Below are positions 20,828 to 62,800 of a stretch of DNA of 64,000 nt, piece after piece; the first letter of the stretch is position 1; every line of letters starts with the position of its first letter. The notes under the pieces are model-generated. The model made no database searches, was not told the DNA's origin, and worked only from the letters and a program-made list of their open reading frames with translations. The stretch is from Klebsormidium nitens (Eukaryota; Plantae; Klebsormidiophyceae). The stretch covers positions 247,926 to 311,925 of the forward strand of contig DF236985.1 of assembly GCA_000708835.1 (NCBI GenBank), given 5' to 3'. A program made the position numbers and the translations under genes.

Positions 20828-23800
20828 ATGGACACCTTGGGAAAGAAAGCATGGGAGGTTCCCCCTTCTTCTCCACTCCCAGATGTGCGGGGCGCCAACA
20901 TGCAGTCAAAGAAAAGGGGCCGCAGCAGCTCGCTGAAGGGGCAAGCAATGCTGAAAGAGACGGTGGCGGAAGGAGAGAAGCGCGAGTCCCCTCAGGCTCC
21001 TGTGTCAAAAAAAAGCAGAGGAGCATATGAAGAAGCGGCGCCACCAGAAAGCCCTAGTTTGAAGATGATGGTTGTAGATTTGGTTGTTGAAGATGGGGTA
21101 GCTGCAACGGGGGGAAGGGGGGAAGGAGGGAGACCACCTCGTGCATTGCTGTATGGTCTGACGGCAGAAGGCGAGAGCGTTTGCTGTCATGTATCAGGTG
21201 GGGATGTACGACGGGCATGTAAAAGGAAAGCCCGAGCAAGAGAAGAAATTGTAGACTTTTAGCTTCTTGGCAGTTCCCATCCACCCTTGGTATCTGATGA
21301 GAGTGTGATTGCCTGATAACATACAAAGACAACGAAGTTGATGGGCTACCATCTTCACAGAGGGACATGCATAGGTTTGACTTGATTACTTGTGTTGCCT
21401 AACCCCCGTTTGTTGATCTTTTCTTCTGTTACTCAGCATTCTATGAATGGGGCCCCTCACACTCCCAACTAAAGTAAACACACTTGCACTTGGTATCCAG
21501 AAAGCTGCCAGTCTCCGCGTTAGTAGACACTGAAGGGCTAATCAGTTCAGCATCTCAATGCCCATTTTCAACTTACGTTGACGAAGCTTTCTGTGTGATT
21601 GCAGACTTTACCCCGTACTTCTGGTTTCCTGCTCCAATCAGTCTCCCCAGCCAAGAAGGCGGCGAGGATTGCCCACTAAGCGAAACAGAGCTTGACATCG
21701 TGTTAGAGCGCCTGAATCAGAAGGTTGCCAGCAGTAAGCAGCGCACTGGGTCGAGAGGCGACAAGCCAATCGTGCGACTCACGCAGGAGGACAGAATGCC
21801 TATCATGTACTATCGCCCGAAAGGCTTGTACCCCTTTTTGAAGGTGAGAGAATGAACGTTCTGGTGATAGACCTCCAGTCCAACTGGGAGCTACAAAACA
21901 GTATCCACCCTTCAGCGAAGGTTCGTGTTAGCCTCTTCATCAATCAAAAGCCAGAGTCTGAAGCCCGTCAAAGCCCTACCTTCTGCGCGATGCTTGCTTT
22001 GTGAGTCCTCAAGCGATCAAGTTTTACGTACTTACTTTTATTCAGGTGGAATACTGGCGGAATAAGGACGCTGGTGTCATTGCAAAGGAGCTGTCCCGCC
22101 TGGCATCTGAGAACGCCCTCAAGGAAAGAGGCATTGCATGGAGGATAGGCAGCCCCTGCGCCTATGAAGAGGACATCAAGGTGCGGCGCATACTGCAGCA
22201 TCTCTGCTCCTCTCATTCAAGGCCTTGGCGTCGCTTCTCGGAGCACCACGTACACCTGCTAAACCATCAAGTCGGGCATAGTGGTGGCTGTTGTACGCTA
22301 ATCAGACACTGTATCGTCACTTCCGACTTCAGCTGCTTAGAGAGACGTGCTTTTGCGCATCGGGCAGGTTTCAAACGTGAACCAGTTCCATCTGGGTCTC
22401 GATAGACGTCTTCTCACATTTGTCAGCAACGTCGCCTGTCAATCCTCTTATTGCCTTCTCGACAGGAATACTTAGACACCTGATAATGCCCCAGTAGGTC
22501 GGATCTTATGCAATATGGTTTTCTTAGCAGTGGCGTGATTTGAGTATGAGCTTTGAGAACTTTCTTCATCTGCAGTTTGGCATGCGTTTCATGTGCGAGA
22601 CCAAGATTGCCGGCGGCGCCTGGCTCACAGTCCCGCGCGACAAGCTGGACCCCATTCCCCTCGCCGAGAGGAGGGCCCCCCGGTGCAGCCTCGAGATGAA
22701 CGTGCTGAGCTGGCATGACATCACTGGCCTTACGCCTGACGCAACCAGCGGGATGACATTCGAACACGCACTGCCGGGAAGCGGGACAGCGGGCGCAGAG
22801 TCAGATTCGGCCGCTGCTGCTGACATTGCCGCGGCAGTCCGAGAGCATGACGACAGGGCCTCACTGCTCAGCCCGGAGGACGAGTCGCTTCTGGAGGAGG
22901 GCGAGGGGGCCTTGTCAGAAACAGGAGCGGCACCTCTGAAAGACGCAACTGCATCGGATACTGGAAACCAAACGGGGAGGAAGGGATCAAGTGCGGACAA
23001 GCAAGGGCTGGAAGAGAGTGCGTCAGTCTCCGAGGGCCTAGCGGTTGCGCCGCTCAAGATATTGGCGGTTAACGTACAGACGGCCGGGCGCGGATCTGTG
23101 GATTCCCATGGCAAAGTCGGGCTCGAGCATTCGGCCCCTTCTTCCCAGAGCTCGAAACGGGGTTCGAAGGCAAAAGGCAAGGCCGCCGTGAGCAGCCCCG
23201 AGAGCTCGAAGTCAGCCGCACCTGCAATGACGTCATCCACTGCGACGGAGCTGGAGGTGCTGGAGGGAGTGCCGGGGAGCGACGTGGCAGGAGGGGGGGT
23301 GGCACTGCCTAACAGGGACCCGGTTCTGATGATTTCAAACAGAATCCGACGGTCGGCAGAGCCGGATGCAAAGCAAAAGTTAGTGGTGTTCACGTTCCGG
23401 GAAGGATTCGTGGCTCCGCCAGGGGTGGACGGGCGAGTGTTCAAGACCGAGAGCGAGATGCTACGGGCATGGAAGCGGTTCGCGACCGAAGAGGCGGACC
23501 CTGACGTCATCTGCCTCTTCCAGCTGAAGGAGAGCCTGAGGTGAGAGCAAGCGCAAGCGCTGCGTTCGTGGTGTTCGTTTGGTGCAGTACCAAAAGAGCA
23601 GGCATTTGAAAGTTTTGAAACATTCCTGACGGGACTGGAAGGGCTGCCCCTTTTTATATGTCAAGGATTTGTGCAAAATGTTTGACTCTCGAAGCTCTGG
23701 TTCCGGACACGTTGAGACGTTACGTGTGAAAGCGTTTGCATCCTTGCCCCTTGTCTCGACGCAGCTTCTGTCTCGTCGGCCTCGCCACACGACAAGCATG

Positions 23801-26800
23801 CTTGGCGTCCTCGGGCTTGTCGACATCCACCCCAATTACTTGGTCGAACTTGCAGTCCTCGTACAGCGGTAATATCTCCTGACATTTTCGCGGAAAGGGA
23901 CGCCCGAAAGCCCAGGCGGTTCTACGTTCTGGCGCAACGTCGCCCAAAATGTTCTCAAAGCACACCCCTCGGCACGGCATTTGACTATTTGTCCTTACGT
24001 GCCATACCCATCCTCAAATTTAAGGTACCTGAACGAGCGGTTCAAGCATCTGAAGCTGGGGTCGCTCGACCTGGGCCGGCGTCCCAACAAGGCGCTCGAG
24101 GTCAAGTCGGTGGTTTCGTACGGCAAGAATTGGGTTAAGAACCAGCAGCGGATGACGGCCACGTCCAACCTGGAGACGTACCGGGCGACCGTCGAGGGGC
24201 GGGTCGTGGTCGATATGCTGCGCTCGATCACGATCGCGCACAATCTGTCCACCTTCACGCTGGCCGAGTGCTCACAGGTACGGAACTCTCCCCGGCATGA
24301 GAAAGTCAATTGGAAATGGCGATGACGTAGCAGATGAAGGTTGCCGGCTTCGTTTCGGACAAAGTGGCCTGGTTGGAAGAGCACATCTTTTTCTGGGGCG
24401 AACGTATAATACGGTCGTTCCGCGAATATGAAACATAAATTTTACCCTATGCAAGTCCATATCATCATTCTTTCGAACTTGATTCTGATCCAGCCGGTTC
24501 TCTTAATGTACTCTATTCTGCCCCCTCTTGAGCTCAAGCAACTTCCAAACCTTCTCTTTCCAGATGTAGGATTCAGCTGCTGTTTTTTTCCATCTCTGTC
24601 AAGCGGACTTGACACACTCCGCTTCTCGTTTCCTGGCGCAGGTGTTTCTGGGAGAGACGAAGGAGGTGCTGTCGGCAGCGGCCATCACGGCACTATGGGC
24701 GGGCCGGCACGGGGGCCCCTCTCGGCTGGCCGTCTACTCTTTGCGAGAGGCGGAGCTGGCTTTGCGGCTGCTGGATAAGCTGCAAATCATCACGGAAACG
24801 CTCGAGATGGCTAGGGTAAGGGACCGTTTCTCCACCGATTTGTGCTCGCCTCCTTTCGGATTCAAAGGAGAAGGCAAGATATTCACAGGCGACGATGTGC
24901 GCTTTTTGTAACCCATAACCTCTAACTAAAACACCGCGTATTTGATCTTTTGAACGAAGCAAGGTGGCCTTCGAAGCCGCAAGCATAATGGTTCCTCCTT
25001 TTGCTATTTCCGTATCGTCGTGAAGGCCACGCCCCCAATCTTACCTGTCTTGTGTCTGAAAACGCGGTGCTATCGAAGGAAAAGCCTTTCGATTATAGTT
25101 TGAAGTATGGAAACTGATGTCACGGGGACGCTCGTCCGGCCTGCAGGTGACCGGGCTCACTCTTTCGGACGTCCTGTACAAAGCCCAAATGATCCGCGTC
25201 CAGAGCCTGCTGCTGCGGAGTGCAGGGAAAGAAGGGGGCCTTCTAGGCGGCCCGCCCCTGGGGGGACAACTCTCAGAGAGCCCGTTTCTGTTGCACCCCA
25301 AGGAGAGGCAGACTGCCGGCTTGTATCAAGACCCCGTTGTAAGTGACGGCTTGGGAGAGAACCCACAACGTGCTGGCAACTCAAATTCCCTTGGGAGCTC
25401 TGCTGTGAAAAGTTACTATCATTTTCGGCAGCCCGTTACGTGGATGCGCAAGAGTTACTTTCCTCGATGACTGTGGTTGACTGTCCGTTCGCTGAAGCCT
25501 ACTTCCAAACATAGTTCCAGTAATTTTCGTTATTGTTATCAAGCAGAGCTTAAAAGCAGTAAGCGCAAACTGGATAAAAGGCGTCTGGTTTATTGCACTT
25601 CTGATTCGAACGACCCATTCAATATATTTGCATCCGAAGGGTTACTTCTATGGGTTTTTCTTTTTTCTTCGCAGGCGATCCTGGACTTTGCCAGCCTGTA
25701 CCCGTCCCTGTTCATCGGCCACAATCTCTGCTACTCTACACTCCTTCACCCCGATGACGTGGCAGCGCTGGACCCCACGGACGTCTACACGACGCCCACG
25801 GGCGCGCACTTTGTCCGAACCGCAGTCCGCCACGGTATCTTGCCGCGCATCTGCAGCGCGCTCATCGCCACCCGCAAGCAGGTGCGTGCGTGCTTTTGTG
25901 CTCCGGTCGTTGTACCGATCGTGCAAATGTTGAGGCACTTCTTCGACTCGAGAGGCCTTGCTTTGCATCTGGTGCACAGAAGGACGTGGTGGCTATTGAT
26001 ACTGGAAACCGCGATCTATTGGGGCGTTTATTGGGGCGCCTAGTCTCGAGGTCAGCCCTGCCCTTTGGGGTCCGTGGGGAAAGTGATAATGCTGGATTAT
26101 TCACATATGTCAAATAGACTATTGGCGTCCTCAAGTAGCCTAGGCTTAGCAAGAGACAGCTTCGTAAGAGGGCCCGTCCTTTTTGTACCGTCGCTTTTCT
26201 GGATCGGACCCGCTTAGTCCTCCCCAATATAAACAAGCACGGTTAAAAGAACAGTCTTTTCCCTTCTTATGCAGGCCCGTGACAGGATGGCCGAGCGTGA
26301 CATCACCCCCACCGAGCGCGCGGTCCTGGATGGTCGGCAGAAGGCGCTGAAGCTGTGCTCGAATGCGCTGTACGGCTTCACCGGGGCGCAGGCGTCGCCC
26401 ATGCAGGCCTTGCCGCTGGCCGACAGCTGTCTCGCCATGGGGGCGGCTGCCTGCAAAAAGGCCGTCGAGCTCGTGAACGGGGCCTTCGACAATGGCAAGG
26501 TCAGTAGCAAAGTTTGGCATCGTGGGTCGCTGAACTTCCCGCATCCTTCAGAGGGCTTTGCGTTGTTTGTCTGACGTTCGGGCTCGGAAGCTATGCTTCC
26601 CGATGTTCCTCTTCATTCAGCGGTAGACAACAAACATTGTTTCTTTTGCGTAGGCGTGGCAGTTCGCTTTGGGTTTTCCCTGCCTCATGCCGTTTATATC
26701 AGGATCCCAGGTTTTGCATTTCGGTCAAGAACAAGCTACCCAAGATAGATTCGCAGGCACGTCTGTTTTTGAAGGCTTTCTTGGGTGACCTTCTTTCTTA

Positions 26801-29800
26801 TCTTCCGCTCTCTAAGACCTACAACCATGTTGGAAGGTTGTCGTGGAGCCTTGAAACAGGCGTTACCGTGGAGAATGCGGTAAGAGAGGGCTCTGTTTGT
26901 GCGGAATCATGGCGGCAGCCATGGCGGAACCTTAGAAGTGCACACCTGAAAACGTCCGATGAAAAGGTATCATCAAAATTGACGGTTCTTGAGCGCTGTT
27001 CAAAAGGCGACATGCAAAAGATGGGCCCCTGATATGAACTGCATGAATCTGCCTCTCCCTCTTGGTGCAGGTCATCTACGCCCAAACCGACAGCGTCTTC
27101 GTCCGCTTCAAGGGTGCATCCATCGCCGAAGCAATCGAGCTGGGGCATCAAGCGTCCGCTGTTGCCTCTGCGGCGTTCCCTCCCCCGATCTCGCTTAAGT
27201 TCGAGCGTGTGCTCAGCCCTTTCCTGCTACTGCAAGTGAACCGGTATGCGGGGCGGCAGTTTACCAGCGCGGGGGAAGGGAAGGGACAAGGGACGCTGTT
27301 TGTGAAAGGAGTAGAGGTGGATCGAAGGTGGGTCACAGCGACCTTTTTAAGTGGAGCAGGGCGGTACAGCTCTTTGCGTCAAACCGGCCATCGGGTTTCA
27401 AGTGCTCGAGCATGGTTCCTATCCTGCGCCGTTCGATCGCTAAGGATGGCAACAAACGGCTCAAGATCAGGAACCCTGCTTGGAGGAGTTAGAACCCGAT
27501 GACAAGTTTGACGCAACCAGCTGTAACATCTTGACTCAGATCCGTGTACTCCGGGGCTTGGCAAGAAACTTGGTTGCGGTCATTTGGAGGTTCCATCAGT
27601 CTTGAGCATTTTCGCTGTCCAGAGATTTTTTGATTGGACAGCTATCAATCACACCGAAGAATGTCAGACGCTTCAGGAATCCAGGGCGCTTGGGCTTGAA
27701 GCTTGAACTTGTAAGCTACATCCCGGGGGCTTCGATACCTATTGCGCTCAAAATTGCGCGAACGAATGGCCATGTGGACAGCAAACTGACAAAACTTCTT
27801 CTTGCCACAGGGACGTACCCGGCTTTGTCCGCATAGTCTGCAAGCGCGTGCTGCAGAAGATCCTGGTGGACCGCGACGTGGACGGCGCGGTGGAGGCGAG
27901 CACGGCCATGATCCGGCGCCTCGTGGGCGGCAAGTGCTCCATGAGCGACCTCGTCATGACGGGGGGGCTCTGGCGGGTGAACGATGAGGACATCACGCGC
28001 GTCGCAGGTGAGGCTCCGGAGATACATTCTTTGATGCTGTCATGACGTTTGATGACGTCACGATGTTGGCGTCTGCGTTCTGGACGGTGCTGAACTGGCT
28101 GCAGAACCGGTGACTCTTGCCTAGCCACGAAACTGGGACGGTTGATCAGGTTCTGTTTGGCCGGTTCTAGGCTTAGCGACGGAAGGCCTTTGGAGTGTGA
28201 CAGCCTCACACCTTCACGTCAACAGTCCCCTCCTCGAAGAAAAGTTTGGTGGCGCTATTTTGATCCTCCTTTTCTTGAGTACTCCCTTCTTCCGATCCCT
28301 TGAGGAAGCAGAAAGTGGAGTTTCTTTGAGTCGAATCCCGCCATCTGTGCAGCTGGCACGCCGAGTAAGGGCCCCAGCGGTCAGCGGGAGGGCCCCGCCA
28401 CTGCGGAGGAGGGCCGCGGGCCGCACGTGTCGCTAGCAGTGCGCCTGAAGAGGCGCGACGGCGACCGGCAGTTCCACATCGGGGAGCGGATACCGTACGT
28501 CCTGGTGTCTGGGCGAGGGAAGCTTCAGGTAGGGGCAGATACGTGAACGCGCGAGTACCTAGTAAAGGCTCGTGCTGTTTGCACAGAATGAACGATCAGG
28601 CACGGGTAATTTGGACAGAATGCGTTTGAACGAACTGACTGTTGCTGCCTCGGATTCGCTGCACTTGCAAATCCTTTGACCTCATCTCATCAAGCTTGTT
28701 CGAGCGTAAGCAGGATCCTTGAAACGGCCCTAGCCGGCTGTTGAAAGCCGAGATTCTGTTCCGCTTGGCTGGCAGAAGGTTGTCAAAAGGGCTATGTTGT
28801 CCAGGTACGAACGGGTCGAAACGTTGCAGGTGTCACAGCGCTTTGACTGGAAAAAAGCATCAAAACTGGAGACCGAATCTGGTGGGGGAAAACGATTTTC
28901 TAGGAAGGAAAAGCGAAAAGCTGCTGGAAGTTGCGCACCGGCCAGGGGATGGGCCATCTTTGGTCTGGATCTGGTGTTATGAAGGCCTGCCGCGCCACAG
29001 AAGAGCTACCAGCCCCGGCCTCTTACCACGGAGTTCCAAAATTCTCCATTGCGTGGATTCCTCGTCGTGAAGTTTAGCGGTTTTGGGATCTCCCGATTTA
29101 ATGCCCCGTGTGTATACGCACAGGACGACATGGCGGAAGACCCCGTGGAAGCGGCGCGCAGGGGGCTGGCGCCAAACATCGGGGTGTACCTGGAAAACAA
29201 GCTGCGCAAGCCGCTCGAGTCCATCTTTGAGTATGTCGTGGTAAGCGCGGCAGCAGGGGTTCTTTACTGCAGTTTTTGAAAAGGAAAGGATGGCGAGATT
29301 GCACTTTTCGGCCTACGAAGCTTCTCCTAGTCTCAAAGAAACGTCAGGGATAGAGCGAGATTGGCCGTCGGATTCCCTTTAGAATACCCCACTTCAAGCT
29401 ACCCCCTTTCTTGTCAAACCGAGGCTACGGTGTCAGCCTTTTGGATCGAAGACGCTTCTGTTGCGCGCACACTTCTACTTTCTGTCTGTCTTCAGCCGGC
29501 AGAACGAGCAAAGCAGCCAAGGGACCGTTCATCAAAAAGCGCCATGTCCTTCGGGCCTTGTCAAGCGGTCAGCCAACGCGCGGGTTTCTTTGTGTGCAGA
29601 GCGACAAGGTGCTGCGGGAGCTGTTTACGGGGCCCCACACGATCCCCCCGCCCTCCATGGCGGCCGCAGCGGCGGCCTCGGGGGGCGGCAAGCAGTCCCT
29701 CATGAGCACCTTCTTCAAGCCCAAGCCGGCGTGCCTCGGATGCCGGTGAGACCGTCACACCGTTTTCCGAGACTCGGGAAGGTTCGTACTTTCCTGGGAC

Positions 29801-31004
29801 GGGGCGATACAGTGTCCTGCGTGGAAGTCGATTATTGAAATTTTCTTTGATGGTTTTTTCTGGATATAAGCCGTTCCGTTGTCCGCTCTTTGCCGGCCTT
29901 GCGGGCTAGGCACTCGGCCCCGATCTGTCAAGGTGCCGAGCATTCTGAGCTGTTGAGCAGGTTGGCAAAATAACTTTTTTGTCGGTACTTGTAAAGCAAT
30001 CCTTCTTCTATCGCACCTTCGCTCTCTTTGAGGCAAAGTGCAAATTTTCGAAAGTTTTGGGCCGTGTCCAATGGAGACTGCTGCCGCATCATGACACTCG
30101 ATTTGCAGCGGCAGTGACTCGAAATCGCTATGCACGGACATGCTTGAGCCTTACCACTCATTACGTAGCTCGTTCCAAGGGCACGGGCACACAGAGCAAG
30201 AATTTTGTCTGTGCTTATTGAAGTACAATTATCGCATACCCGCCCTTAAGAGGGGTATTTGGAGTACTTTGATCACCGGAAGACGGCTCAGTTTAGCAGC
30301 GTGACTTGCCAGCCATACTGATCGGAGATCAGCAGCGTGAGTTTCGAGCCGGCATACTGCTTAGCGACAGAAAGTATGCAATTGCCGATAAACAGTCGCC
30401 GCACCATGACGTACGCATGATGTGCGGATGATGTGGAACCACCCGGATAAGCTTACCCAAAGAGTTCCCTCAGACGGCCAATGGAGGCGGAACGCGGGCC
30501 GCTGTGCGCATCGTGCGGGGCTAGCGGTGCGGGGCAGCGCGTGGTCGCCGAGCTGGCGGCGGAGCAGCGCGAGCAGGAGGCGCTCTTCGCGGCCGCGGCG
30601 TCCGAGGTGCGCTTGGGGACGCCTTGCGTTCTTTCCTCGTCTCGGACCACACGCTTCCTTCCTTCACGACGCTTTGTATTCTGCTTTTGATGTTTCCTTG
30701 CTGCTTCTTCACGAGAATCTTTCCCATCTTCACCTGAATAAGATTAGCAATCATTCTGAAGCTCTGTCCTGCGAGCCAGCGTTGTGGCGCTGTTCCGTTT
30801 CCTTATCACCGTCATAGTGTGAGGCCCAAGTATGCTCAAGCACTATCCTCTTCGCCTTTGCAGAGTGTGCGCTGTCACTCCGGTACTCCTTTCGACCCTG
30901 TACTCGATACAAACGCGGACTCACCGGCCTTCTTCATCCGATATGAAGCACCTAGAGCCTTGCAGCAAATCGAGCAATCAATCTCCCGGTTTGAAGAAAG
31001 CTGA
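20828..31004 (+). CDS. Divergent DNA polymerase delta catalytic-subunit-like protein (family B), ~1308 aa, with degenerate exonuclease and CysB motifs
   Basis: 16 GT-AG exons totalling 3927 nt with no internal stop: 20828-21197, 21605-21843, 22046-22180, 22576-23540, 24025-24277, 24642-24815, 25147-25338, 25675-25881, 26275-26499, 27071-27327, 27811-28007, 28353-28528, 29124-29240, 29600-29745, 30474-30606, 30864-31004. POLD1-like segments: ILDFASLYPS..HNLCYSTL, TPTGAHFV, VLDGRQKALKLCSNALYGFTG, YAQTDSVFV, HVSLAVRLKRRD..GERIPYV, EDP..YLENKLRKPLESIF, CLGC/CASC. Confidence 0.9.
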
Positions 31005-32239: not shown

Positions 32240-38252
<6,013 letters not shown>

Positions 38253-59877: not shown

Positions 59878-62800
59878 ATGGCGGCCAGCTGGAGCTTTGC
59901 AGCTCTGGTGCTGGTACTCCTGCTGATGACCCCGACGGCAAAAGCGCAAGGTGAGCTTGTCATGCCAACTCAACTGGAGCAAAAGTCTGTGATGGGGTGA
60001 ATTTATTCTTTGGGGTCTTTAGCTCGCTTGTTGATCGACCGCTGAATCTTGCTTGGGGCCACAAGCTGACCAAATTGGCAAACGGCACCAAACCACCACC
60101 CGATATCCATATCATTCATTTTGTGGGCATCAAGTTGTTTTGGTGGAGGAGTACCTTTAAAAAAACCTGCAGCCACCTTCTTGAGCAAAGTGGGCGACAG
60201 CGCACCGAAAGCCACTGTGTCACAAAACACAATTTCTGATCATCTCAACATGACAACCCTTTACACCTGCCATACTCTTGCCCCTGCAGTCGTCCAAGTC
60301 GGGTCAAGGTACTGGACCTTGATGTCGAATACAGACTTCTCGGGGTTCGACATATTGATCGGCACTGGTCAGTGTGGCGGTGGGCGTGGATACATGTCGT
60401 ACACTCCGTCGCAGTGCGCGACCGTGTGCCTCTCGTACACAAATTGCGTGGGCTTCGAAGTGACCACGGACTTCCAAAAGTGCTGCTACGCCAAGAACCA
60501 GATGAGCGGCGCGGGCACCTCCGCAACCGCCGACGCGTACATTCTCATTCGGAGTGAGCGGACACACAACCCTAGTAATCTCGTCGACGTGAATCAACAA
60601 CGGATCTAAGACGCCTTGATGCCAGTGCGGTGGGGAGAGTTCGTCTAAATGGGGGGCCAGAATGGATAGGACGAAGCGTTGTTGGTCACTGGTCCGACTT
60701 GCAGGAGGGCAAGCAGTGTGGAATGCTGGAGCCTGTTCTGTGACATGTGATTCTGTCAAAAGGGGTTCTGATCTACGACAATCCTGGAGTCATGTCGTTT
60801 CTGAGGACCGTGTCACATCTTGAGATTCAAGAAGCCAGGAAGTTGACGCCTTTTGACTTGGAAGTAACAAGGCGTCCTCATCACAACCTCCCGGTGTGGA
60901 GCAGCCAGCGAGTGAAGGACTTTATCAGGTACATGCACAAGCAACGCTCCAACTTCAGGTGATGGCGGTTTGTACTTTTGCCCAAAGTCCCAGCACTTGC
61001 CCCAGTCGAGGTTCAGAAAGCGTAAGTGATTTCTCTTACTTTTTCCTGCAGATCCTCCCCCAAATCCTCCTCCGAACCCACCGCCACCGAATCCACCGCC
61101 GCCCAACCCACCACCCCCCAACCCTCCGCCAAACCCGCCGCCTCCGAACCCTCCTCCTAAACCGCCACCGCCCAACCCTCCTCCAAATCCGCCACCGCCC
61201 AACCCTCCTCCAAATCCGCCACCACCAAACCTTCCTCCTAACCCGCCACCGCCCAATCCTCCTCCAAACCNNNNNNNNNNNNNNNNNNNNNNNNNNNNNN
61301 NNNNNNNNNNNNNNNNNNNNNNNNNNNNNNNNNNNNNNNNNNNNNNNNNNNNNNNNNNNNNNNNNNNNNNNNNNNNNNNNNNNNNNNNNNNNNNNNNNNN
61401 NNNNNNNNNNNNNNNNNNNNNNNNNNNNNNNNNNNNNNNNNNNNNNNNNNNNNNNNNNNNNNNNNNNNNNNNNNNNNNNNNNNNNNNNNNNNNNNNNNNN
61501 NNNNNNNNNNNNNNNNNNNNNNNNNNNNNNNNNNNNNNNNNNNNNNNNNNNNNNNNNNNNNNNNNNNNNNNNNNNNNNNNNNNNNNNNNNNNNNNNNNNN
61601 NNNNNNNNNNNNNNNNNNNNNNNNNNNNNNNNNNNNNNNNNNNNNNNNNNNNNNNNNNNNNNNNNNNNNNNNNNNNNNNNNNNNNNNNNNNNNNNNNNNN
61701 NNNNNNNNNNNNNNNNNNNNNNNNNNNNNNNNNNNNNNNNNNNNNNNNNNNNNNNNNNNNNNNNNNNNNNNNNNNNNNNNNNNNNNNNNNNNNNNNNNNN
61801 NNNNNNNNNNNNNNNNNNNNNNNNNNNNNNNNNNNNNNNNNNNNNNNNNNNNNNNNNNNNNNNNNNNNNNNNNNNNNNNNNNNNNNNNNNNNNNNNNNNN
61901 NNNNNNNNNNNNNNNNNNNNNNNNNNNNNNNNNNNNNNNNNNNNNNNNNNNNNNNNNNNNNNNNNNNNNNNNNNNNNNNNNNNNNNNNNNNNNNNNNNNN
62001 NNNNNNNNNNNNNNNNNNNNNNNNNNNNNNNNNNNNNNNNNNNNNNNNNNNNNNNNNNNNNNNNNNNNNNNNNNNNNNNNNNNNNNNNNNNNNNNNNNNN
62101 NNNNNNNNNNNNNNTGCACCACCGCCCGAACCTCTTCCTAACCCGCCGCCCATATACCCACCACCAGACCCACCACCTCCAAACCCCCCCCCAAACCCAC
62201 CGCCTCCAAACCCACCACCAGACCCACCACCGCCTAATCCTCCTCCCAATCCACCACCAAACCTGCCCCCGCCAGACCCACCGCCGAATCCACCGCCTCT
62301 CAAACCTCCTCCTAGTCCACCCCCCCCAAATCCTCCTCAACCGAACCCGCCCCCTCCAAACCCGCCCCCCCACAACCACCCCCTAACTCGCCTCCTCCAA
62401 ACCCGCCTCCTCCTAACCAACCTCCTCCGAGCCCTCCCCGTCCAAACCCGCCACCTAACCCGCCCCTCGGCAATCGCCGCCCCCCCCTTGAGCCCGCCCC
62501 CACAGCCGTCACCCCCGGTCCCTCCACCAGATGCGACGCTTTTGAACTTTGAGACGAGTGCTATTCTTTTCCCGAACTTCAGCCCCTCTGGTGAGTAGCA
62601 TATAATTTGAATTGGGCATCTGATTGGCACTCAAGAAGTTCCGAACGGGAGCGGCAGCAGGTCGAGTGAATGAGTACCGCTGCCATGTAATCCTAGTCGT
62701 CCACTCGAGCCGAACTCCGCAAAGCGCTTGCGAGGAAGGTTTATCACAGGACTGTTGATTGTAGAATTTGGACGCTAGGGCATTTAATGAACGATCACTG

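Follow-up and report, generated by a model that had tools for sequence, protein, structure and literature searches.

The stretch of DNA analysed here, referred to below as the window, is a 64,000-nucleotide segment of the genome of the streptophyte alga Klebsormidium nitens (assembly GCA_000708835.1, contig DF236985.1, positions 247,926 to 311,925), and it carries an intron-rich gene for a family-B DNA polymerase, which occupies 20.8-31.0 kb of the window on the plus strand. Exon-sized open reading frames in this interval are matched by the Pfam domains for family-B exonuclease and polymerase. The window exons were searched individually, and the full-length product was represented by a public protein of 1308 amino acids, P0020, which is named 'DNA polymerase catalytic subunit [Klebsormidium nitens]'. 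P0020 matches the window exons in tblastn at about 100% identity per exon, from 20828 to 31001, and therefore the window is K. nitens nuclear DNA. An apicomplexan origin, to which base composition and low-complexity inserts had seemed to point, was rejected on the strength of this match. Together with spliced contigs from four runs, this match places the whole multi-exon gene at 20828..31004, with a reading frame that is unbroken over at least 16 exon segments. The protein is a family-B DNA polymerase by both Pfam domains, scoring 266 bits for PF00136 and 51.9 bits for PF03104 (curated cut-offs 23), and single exons match these domains too.

The gene is transcribed and spliced as read, since its splice joints are confirmed by intron-less contigs of 2.7-4.4 kb, obtained from four public runs belonging to four studies, which carry the joint within the exonuclease motif Exo II and seven further GT..AG splices with zero differing letters. 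Eighteen runs from seven studies contain at least half of the sampled words of the stretch, which is approximately its exon fraction. The exon at 22576..23540 (plus strand, as are all gene features given here), which is bounded by contig joints and matched by PF03104, codes for the last portion of the N-terminal domain, the Exo I strand with its two disordered inserts, and the opening portion of Exo II. A GT..AG intron at 23541..24024 then splits Exo II, its joint (23540/24025) being present in all four runs. The remaining part of Exo II ((R)YLNERFKHLKL...) and the exonuclease-domain core are encoded by the exon at 24025..24277, as placed by tblastn and contig joints. The donor reads ...CTG AG/GT at 23540/23541 and the acceptor AG/G TAC at 24024/24025, which gives the product ...KESLRYLNERF.

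The original prediction for this locus, made from the letters alone, was that all three 3'-5' exonuclease motifs of a DNA polymerase delta (Pol delta)-like protein are degenerate and that the exonuclease domain is catalytically off, and its readings of the motifs are exact, in frame and, for Exo II, across the RNA-confirmed splice. Exo I reads PLKILAVNVQT (23050..23082), with Asn (AAC, 23071-23073) for Asp and Gln (CAG, 23077-23079) for Glu. The first part of Exo II, DPDVICLFQLKESL(R), lies at 23497..23540 (peptide to 23538) and has Ser (23533-23535) at the catalytic Asp position. Exo III reads RLAVYSLRE (24723..24749), in which the Tyr at 24735 is kept and Glu (24747-24749) stands for Asp. 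Alignment with Pol delta, which had been named as a check, placed N, Q, S and E at the four carboxylate positions. The alignment comprised 68 sequences, namely 40 members of the polymerase family described below and 28 canonical Pol delta sequences. Exo I aligned column for column with the FDIEC of the 28 canonical sequences, with N at D316 and Q at E318, and a HMMER comparison with solved human Pol delta (6s1m) placed Ser at D402 and Glu at D515; we take D316, E318, D402 and D515 to be the human residue numbers, which is consistent with the printed alignment ranges. When the exon carrying Exo II and the core was used alone, phmmer gave no match in the PDB; the full-length protein aligned well. 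The proposed correspondence of Exo II with that of Pol delta held in part. A non-acidic residue occupies the Asp position in both registers, but the match is not gap-free: relative to Pol delta, a single residue is missing between DPDVI and YL, directly before the Ser.

In DEDD exonucleases, four carboxylates hold two metals, and losing either Exo I residue abolishes proofreading. Because three of these four are replaced in the K. nitens protein, by Asn, Gln and Ser, its exonuclease should be inactive and no proofreading would be expected, as had been predicted. All four carboxylates are present in 28 of 28 canonical Pol delta sequences and none of the 40 family members keeps the Exo II or the Exo III Asp, so the motif changes, as read from this alignment, are not chance variation.

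We then examined selection and fold. Comparison with a Klebsormidium-like ortholog on a JGI metagenome contig (L001) gave a ratio of nonsynonymous to synonymous substitution rates (dN/dS) of 0.087 overall, 0.067 for the exonuclease core (residues 489-770), 0.033 for the 20 codons around Exo I and 0.055 for the palm and fingers, the lowest of the large domains compared; these values are approximate, with dS at about 1. The exonuclease peptides of this ortholog are identical to those of K. nitens except for D to E in DPDV and L to M in RLAVY. An AlphaFold2 model of P0020 residues 76-780, built from a 37-sequence alignment, had a predicted local distance difference test score (pLDDT) above 90 in the greater part of the N-terminal domain and exonuclease core, with two short dips, and of about 97 for the Exo I strand, which lies between the two disordered inserts. 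Foldseek ranked human and yeast Pol delta first (E-values 5e-32 to 1e-27; best match 9ekb, 5e-32), followed by herpesvirus polymerases and then by DNA polymerase zeta (Pol zeta). The suggestion that the exonuclease domain is retained as a fold is thus borne out by its low dN/dS, by the confident model, itself one of the proposed checks, and by the Pol delta structures that match it best. Together, the model and the substitution rates support a constrained fold, in a domain predicted to be catalytically off.

The K. nitens gene does not stand alone but is, on the alignment, a member of a conserved family. With the Exo I exon as query, an exhaustive HMMER scan recovered full-length relatives in Chlorokybus and the fern Adiantum, and two word-indexed searches added the streptophytes Ceratopteris, Diphasiastrum, Physcomitrium patens and Closterium and the chlorophytes Coccomyxa, Trebouxia, Chlorella, Micractinium, Auxenochlorella, Monoraphidium, Tetradesmus, Scenedesmus, Volvox, Dunaliella, Haematococcus, Bryopsis, Ostreobium and Cymbomonas. 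The family as found thus extends over green algae, a moss, a lycophyte and ferns. No seed-plant member was among the word-indexed search hits, while seed-plant Pol delta and Pol zeta appeared there. P. patens carries a family member and canonical POLD1 on separate contigs, and canonical POLD1 was recovered as well from Micractinium sp. CCAP 211/92, Auxenochlorella and Volvox reticuliferus.

Some proteins in this set have unusual architectures or origins. A protein from the stramenopile Pelagomonas calceolata (P0183, 1163 amino acids, on a 5.4 Mb contig) has HVNRYAG and no Exo II Asp and falls with the family in the tree, at the end of a very long branch; the motif C region is absent from its gene model. 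This could be a case of the family outside Viridiplantae, for instance a gene of green-algal origin. Two proteins of Cymbomonas tetramitiformis (P0106 and P0126) carry a PF03372 endonuclease/exonuclease/phosphatase domain at residues 21-189, about 800 residues upstream of the dead exonuclease domain, for which either a genuine fusion, with a nuclease provided in cis, or a merged gene model may account. In Closterium sp. NIES-65, a protein of 3028 amino acids (P0182) joins a family-type polymerase to helicase C and HA2 domains (PF00271 and PF07717), as either a fusion or a merged annotation.

Across the family, the proofreading ligands are lost, and the two polymerase metal ligands and the residues that bind the deoxynucleoside triphosphate (dNTP) are kept. 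The Exo I Asp is retained by 28 of 40 members, the others having H, N, S or E, and the Exo I Glu by only one (L in 17, Q in 9, V in 7). At the Exo II Asp position, where a one-residue deletion runs across the whole family, T (20), S (14) and N (4) prevail, and the Exo III Asp is mostly replaced by R (31) or E (6); the Exo III Tyr is kept in 37 of 40. The canonical Pol delta set (n = 28) is invariant at every tabulated site. Within the polymerase domain, the catalytic Asp and the steric-gate Tyr of motif A (DFASLYPS in K. nitens, 25684..25707) and the Lys, Asn and Tyr of motif B (KLCSNALYG, 26350..26376) are conserved in 40 of 40 members. Motif C reads YAQTDS in K. nitens (27077..27094), with Gln at 27083 for the first Asp and the second Asp kept at 27089. 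The Thr and the second Asp are present in all 39 aligned members, in which the first Asp is replaced by Gln (31) or His (8). The primer-terminus contact motif KKRYAG aligns with VNRYAG (27236..27253), and the family-wide state is [V/I/H]-N-R-Y, in which the R and Y are kept. Three positions around the primer terminus have therefore acquired new fixed states, and a conserved palm Arg at P0020 position 902, where Ala stands in at least three-quarters of members, is a fourth change of such kind. The original prediction was silent on the altered polymerase site (YAQTDS, VNRYAG) and on the family-wide scope of the pattern. The conservation pattern most likely reflects a polymerase site that is active but remodelled, and the loss of the KKRY lysines suggests a relaxed sensing of primer-terminal base pairs, from which an extender-like or repair role may be proposed.

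We next considered whether the family belongs with Pol delta or with Pol zeta. The closest solved relative by score is Pol delta (431 bits, 6s1m), followed by Pol zeta (162 bits) and Pol alpha (about 89 bits). In trees, with viral polymerases as outgroups and support from quick searches given as the Shimodaira-Hasegawa-like approximate likelihood ratio test (SH-aLRT), the family forms one clade (SH-aLRT 97-100) outside all canonical Pol delta, and its nesting with green Pol delta is rejected by the approximately unbiased (AU) test (p = 0.005). Branching inside the family roughly tracks the species tree: one half is streptophyte and the other presumably chlorophyte, and several of the rows are metagenome or Logan proteins. 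A first tree without Pol zeta had given an 'ancient offshoot outside Pol delta', a description that was incomplete once zeta rows were added. These rows, from angiosperms, Spirogloea and flatworms, were gained with a long-member query, so that a length filter dropped Pol delta. Trees with zeta resolve three clades, in which the family is sister to zeta with an SH-aLRT of 99 under LG+G4 (53 rows) and 94 under LG+C20+F+G4-PMSF (28 rows), and zeta without the family is supported at 100.

Independently of the trees, other characters are the same or alike in the family and zeta. Pol zeta has Exo II D to S in 9 of 9 sequences, Exo I E to Q, L or H in 9 of 9 and Exo III D to R in 6 of 9; at this last site most family members likewise have R, and the K. 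nitens gene has E. The Phe after TDSx (TDSxF) occurs in both. All 18 family members measured have an insertion at the junction of the N-terminal domain and Exo I, the site of zeta's large insert (PMC6895278), and the median spacing from the anchor to Exo I is 109 residues in the family, 52 in Pol delta and 902 in Pol zeta. The original likening of the dead exonuclease domain to that of Pol zeta was apt. The 'delta backbone' assigned to the protein stands for its best sequence and structure match but not for its phylogenetic place. The zeta kinship of the family is probable, not proven. Since the family is sister to zeta and zeta has the same or similar replacements at its exonuclease sites, the inactivation was probably inherited from an exonuclease-dead ancestor common to both and would not be a fresh loss on Pol delta.

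Two observations concern Pol zeta itself. A Chlamydomonas deletion mutant of 'Pol zeta' has been described, but as the paper provides no identifier for the gene, it is assignable to neither lineage. A cluster of 12 proteins from ENA metagenomes (P0187; 8 of about 3432 amino acids) combines, in one predicted protein, a zeta-type catalytic subunit with the Y-family domains PF00817, PF11798 and PF11799, as if a Rev1/Y-family polymerase and REV3 had fused naturally.

The protein was compared with known systems. With Pol delta (POLD1/Pol3) it shares similar size, almost identical motifs A and B and the order of N-terminal domain, exonuclease, polymerase and Cys-rich C-terminal domain. In contrast to Pol delta, it is without three of the four exonuclease carboxylates, has YAQTDS and VNRYAG instead of YGDTDS and KKRYAG, contains insertions around Exo I, has no detectable Pfam POL3_N domain in P0020 and is placed outside the Pol delta clade. 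With Pol zeta (REV3/REV3L) it would have in common an inactive exonuclease domain, with Ser in Exo II and Gln or Leu in Exo I, and it shares the junction insertion and is placed as sister in maximum-likelihood trees. However, zeta keeps YGDTDS and KKRY, is far larger (1500-3100 amino acids), forms its own fully supported clade that excludes the K. nitens protein, and has a large junction insert with Rev7-binding motifs, the anchor-to-Exo I spacing being about 900 residues in plant zeta and 151 in K. nitens, in which the insert is short. Pol alpha and the C-terminal half of Pol epsilon likewise keep family-B folds after the loss of catalytic residues (PMC2669801). The Pol epsilon half, however, has lost its polymerase motifs, and the K. 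nitens family keeps motifs A and B and the second motif C Asp.

Archaeal PolB2, including Sulfolobus Dpo2, offers the closest functional parallel to the altered active site. It is a family-B enzyme that lacks proofreading, has a substituted first motif C Asp and was long predicted to be inactive, yet it is a robust polymerase (PMC8764526, PMC7390963) that extends mismatches and lesion-paired ends (PMC7390963, PMC8764526). The PolB_SITDG group has a hydrophobic residue at the same motif C position (PMC7544198). PolB2/Dpo2 differs in being archaeal and in having an exonuclease domain that is absent or far more diverged and does not persist as a recognisable fold, and since it is not closely related, the likeness is an analogy of mechanism without kinship. 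PolB2/Dpo2 is also without the Cys-rich C-terminal domain.

That C-terminal domain is altered in K. nitens. The CysB site, which in Pol delta-type proteins is the [4Fe-4S] site, is represented by a remnant, SVRCHSGTPFDPVLDTNADS, at 30864..30923 (derived by hand from the tblastn match 30861-31001), which reads S-x2-C ... D ... S and retains one of the four Cys. A Klebsormidium-like relative (L078, 8024-8314) has C-x2-Y ... C ... S, with two of four Cys left. Nearly all other family members have all four, and the flanking residues are conserved. CysA is kept in K. nitens, and PF14260 was not detected in P0020. Most other family members keep both CysA and CysB. From these sequences, the loss of the iron-sulfur cluster looks specific to the Klebsormidium lineage.

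Taken together, our preferred reading, to which we assign a probability of roughly 0.55, is that the gene represents a conserved third lineage of delta/zeta-type polymerases, in which the exonuclease is dead but folded and the polymerase is active and specialised. The exonuclease domain would be a structural module unable to bind the two catalytic metals, with Asn and Gln in Exo I and Ser in Exo II in place of three carboxylates and only the conservative D to E change in Exo III remaining, and this dead state would be old, probably dating from the common ancestor with Pol zeta. The polymerase would be remodelled by the change of the first motif C Asp to Gln or His and of the KKRY lysines to Val, Ile or His and to Asn. 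The protein would then act as a specialised polymerase without proofreading, extending lesions or mismatches or serving repair synthesis, and not as a replicase. The motif states, the transcription and splicing, the purifying selection, the family with its distribution, the predicted fold and the tree position are shown by the data above, whereas lost exonuclease activity, continued polymerase activity and the role in the cell are inferred. Several points weigh against this. We found no report of a motif C Asp to Gln or His change in an active eukaryotic polymerase, and the change could abolish catalysis; primer binding, too, could be weaker without the two KKRY lysines. Canonical REV3 and canonical POLD1 were not demonstrated in K. 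nitens itself, and a metagenome scan with a zeta profile found 76 zeta loci, none of them in the sample that holds the Klebsormidium-like ortholog. As to kinship, a clade of delta with the family is rejected only marginally (AU p = 0.040), the stems of zeta and of the family are both long, so that the sister grouping joins two long branches, and polarised signature columns are indecisive (5 for zeta with the family, 3 for delta with the family). Finally, with CysB degenerate, binding of the B subunit may have been lost and function may be drifting in the K. nitens lineage.

The main alternative for the enzyme itself is that both activities are off and that the protein persists as a subunit with a structural or regulatory role, perhaps as a scaffold in the manner of the Pol epsilon C-terminal half or by competing for PCNA or the accessory subunits of Pol delta. 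The replacement of the first motif C Asp in all aligned members, the absence of both KKRY lysines and the Arg 902 to Ala change speak for such a pseudo-polymerase, and family-B modules that have lost their activity are well established (PMC2669801, PMC2527604). We nevertheless consider it unlikely. Retained synthesis is argued for because the metal- and dNTP-binding residues are fully conserved and dN/dS is low in the palm and fingers: the two metal-ligand Asp, the steric-gate Tyr and the motif B Lys, Asn and Tyr are universal among the aligned members from chlorophytes and streptophytes, a scaffold would have no need of these residues, and archaeal PolB2 synthesises robustly despite the same motif C change. 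Somewhat less likely again is that the family is simply a compact form of REV3, its ortholog in algae and non-seed plants, mis-annotated as Pol delta, with no extra polymerase involved. The sister position to zeta, the same or similar exonuclease-site replacements and the insertion at the same junction fit this, as does the fact that canonical REV3 was not demonstrated in any genome that carries the family. However, zeta of animals, angiosperms and Spirogloea excludes the family from its clade, and zeta keeps YGDTDS and KKRY, which the family never does. Streptophytes such as Closterium are in the family and Spirogloea is in the zeta clade, two algae which we take to be of the same class, and both lineages therefore would have coexisted in the streptophyte ancestor.

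Two further explanations have very little probability. An exonuclease that is still active through other acidic ligands could draw on the Glu at 23530, beside the Exo II Ser, and on the Glu at the Exo III position, and many members have Asp or Glu before their Ser or Thr. Yet the residue before the Ser is not conserved (His, Lys and Asn occur) and 31 of the 40 members carry Arg at the Exo III position, which makes this improbable, and both Exo I ligands are amides in the K. nitens protein. Single substitutions of DEDD carboxylates abolish proofreading. A decaying POLD1 duplicate is, if anything, less probable still and effectively refuted: the many altered catalytic motifs and the degenerate CysB would suit a pseudogene, but the frame is intact over the exon segments described above, the gene is expressed and correctly spliced, the overall dN/dS indicates constraint, and orthologs with the same derived motifs extend from chlorophytes to ferns.

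Outside the polymerase gene, an open reading frame at 32970-33443 on the minus strand, just downstream, encodes EF-hand calcium-binding repeats of the calmodulin type or of the type at the C-terminus of calcium-dependent protein kinases. The G+C content of the window is 0.34 at 60001-62000 and 0.47-0.61 in all other 2-kb bins.

The textbook set of nuclear family-B polymerases in eukaryotes has four members: alpha, delta, epsilon and zeta. Beside the preferred reading of a conserved third delta/zeta-type lineage, a bolder form, which we hold tentatively and at a little below even odds, is that the family is a fifth nuclear family-B polymerase of green algae and non-seed plants, a compact and specialised sister of zeta that was lost in seed plants. 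It would have been proofreading-dead already in the Viridiplantae ancestor or earlier and would use a conserved Gln/His-Thr-Asp active-site motif and an Asn-for-Lys primer-contact motif. We did not find a description of the family in full-text literature searches: a review of plant polymerases gives only POLD1 (PMC6801657), and a group of this kind goes unmentioned in a survey of family-B diversity (PMC7544198). This ancient green-lineage family of Pol delta/zeta-type polymerases is apparently undescribed. Public databases name its members automatically 'DNA polymerase delta catalytic subunit' or 'hypothetical protein', and the delta label can mislead gene counts and orthology tables. Gene targeting is routine in the moss P. 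patens, which carries a member, and the function of the family is therefore directly testable. The family also bears on the timing of Pol zeta's loss of proofreading. As an additional lineage in Viridiplantae that is conserved, expressed and selected, it would be a new player in plant and algal genome maintenance and would offer a natural experiment on the roles of the KKRY lysines and of the first Asp in motif C.

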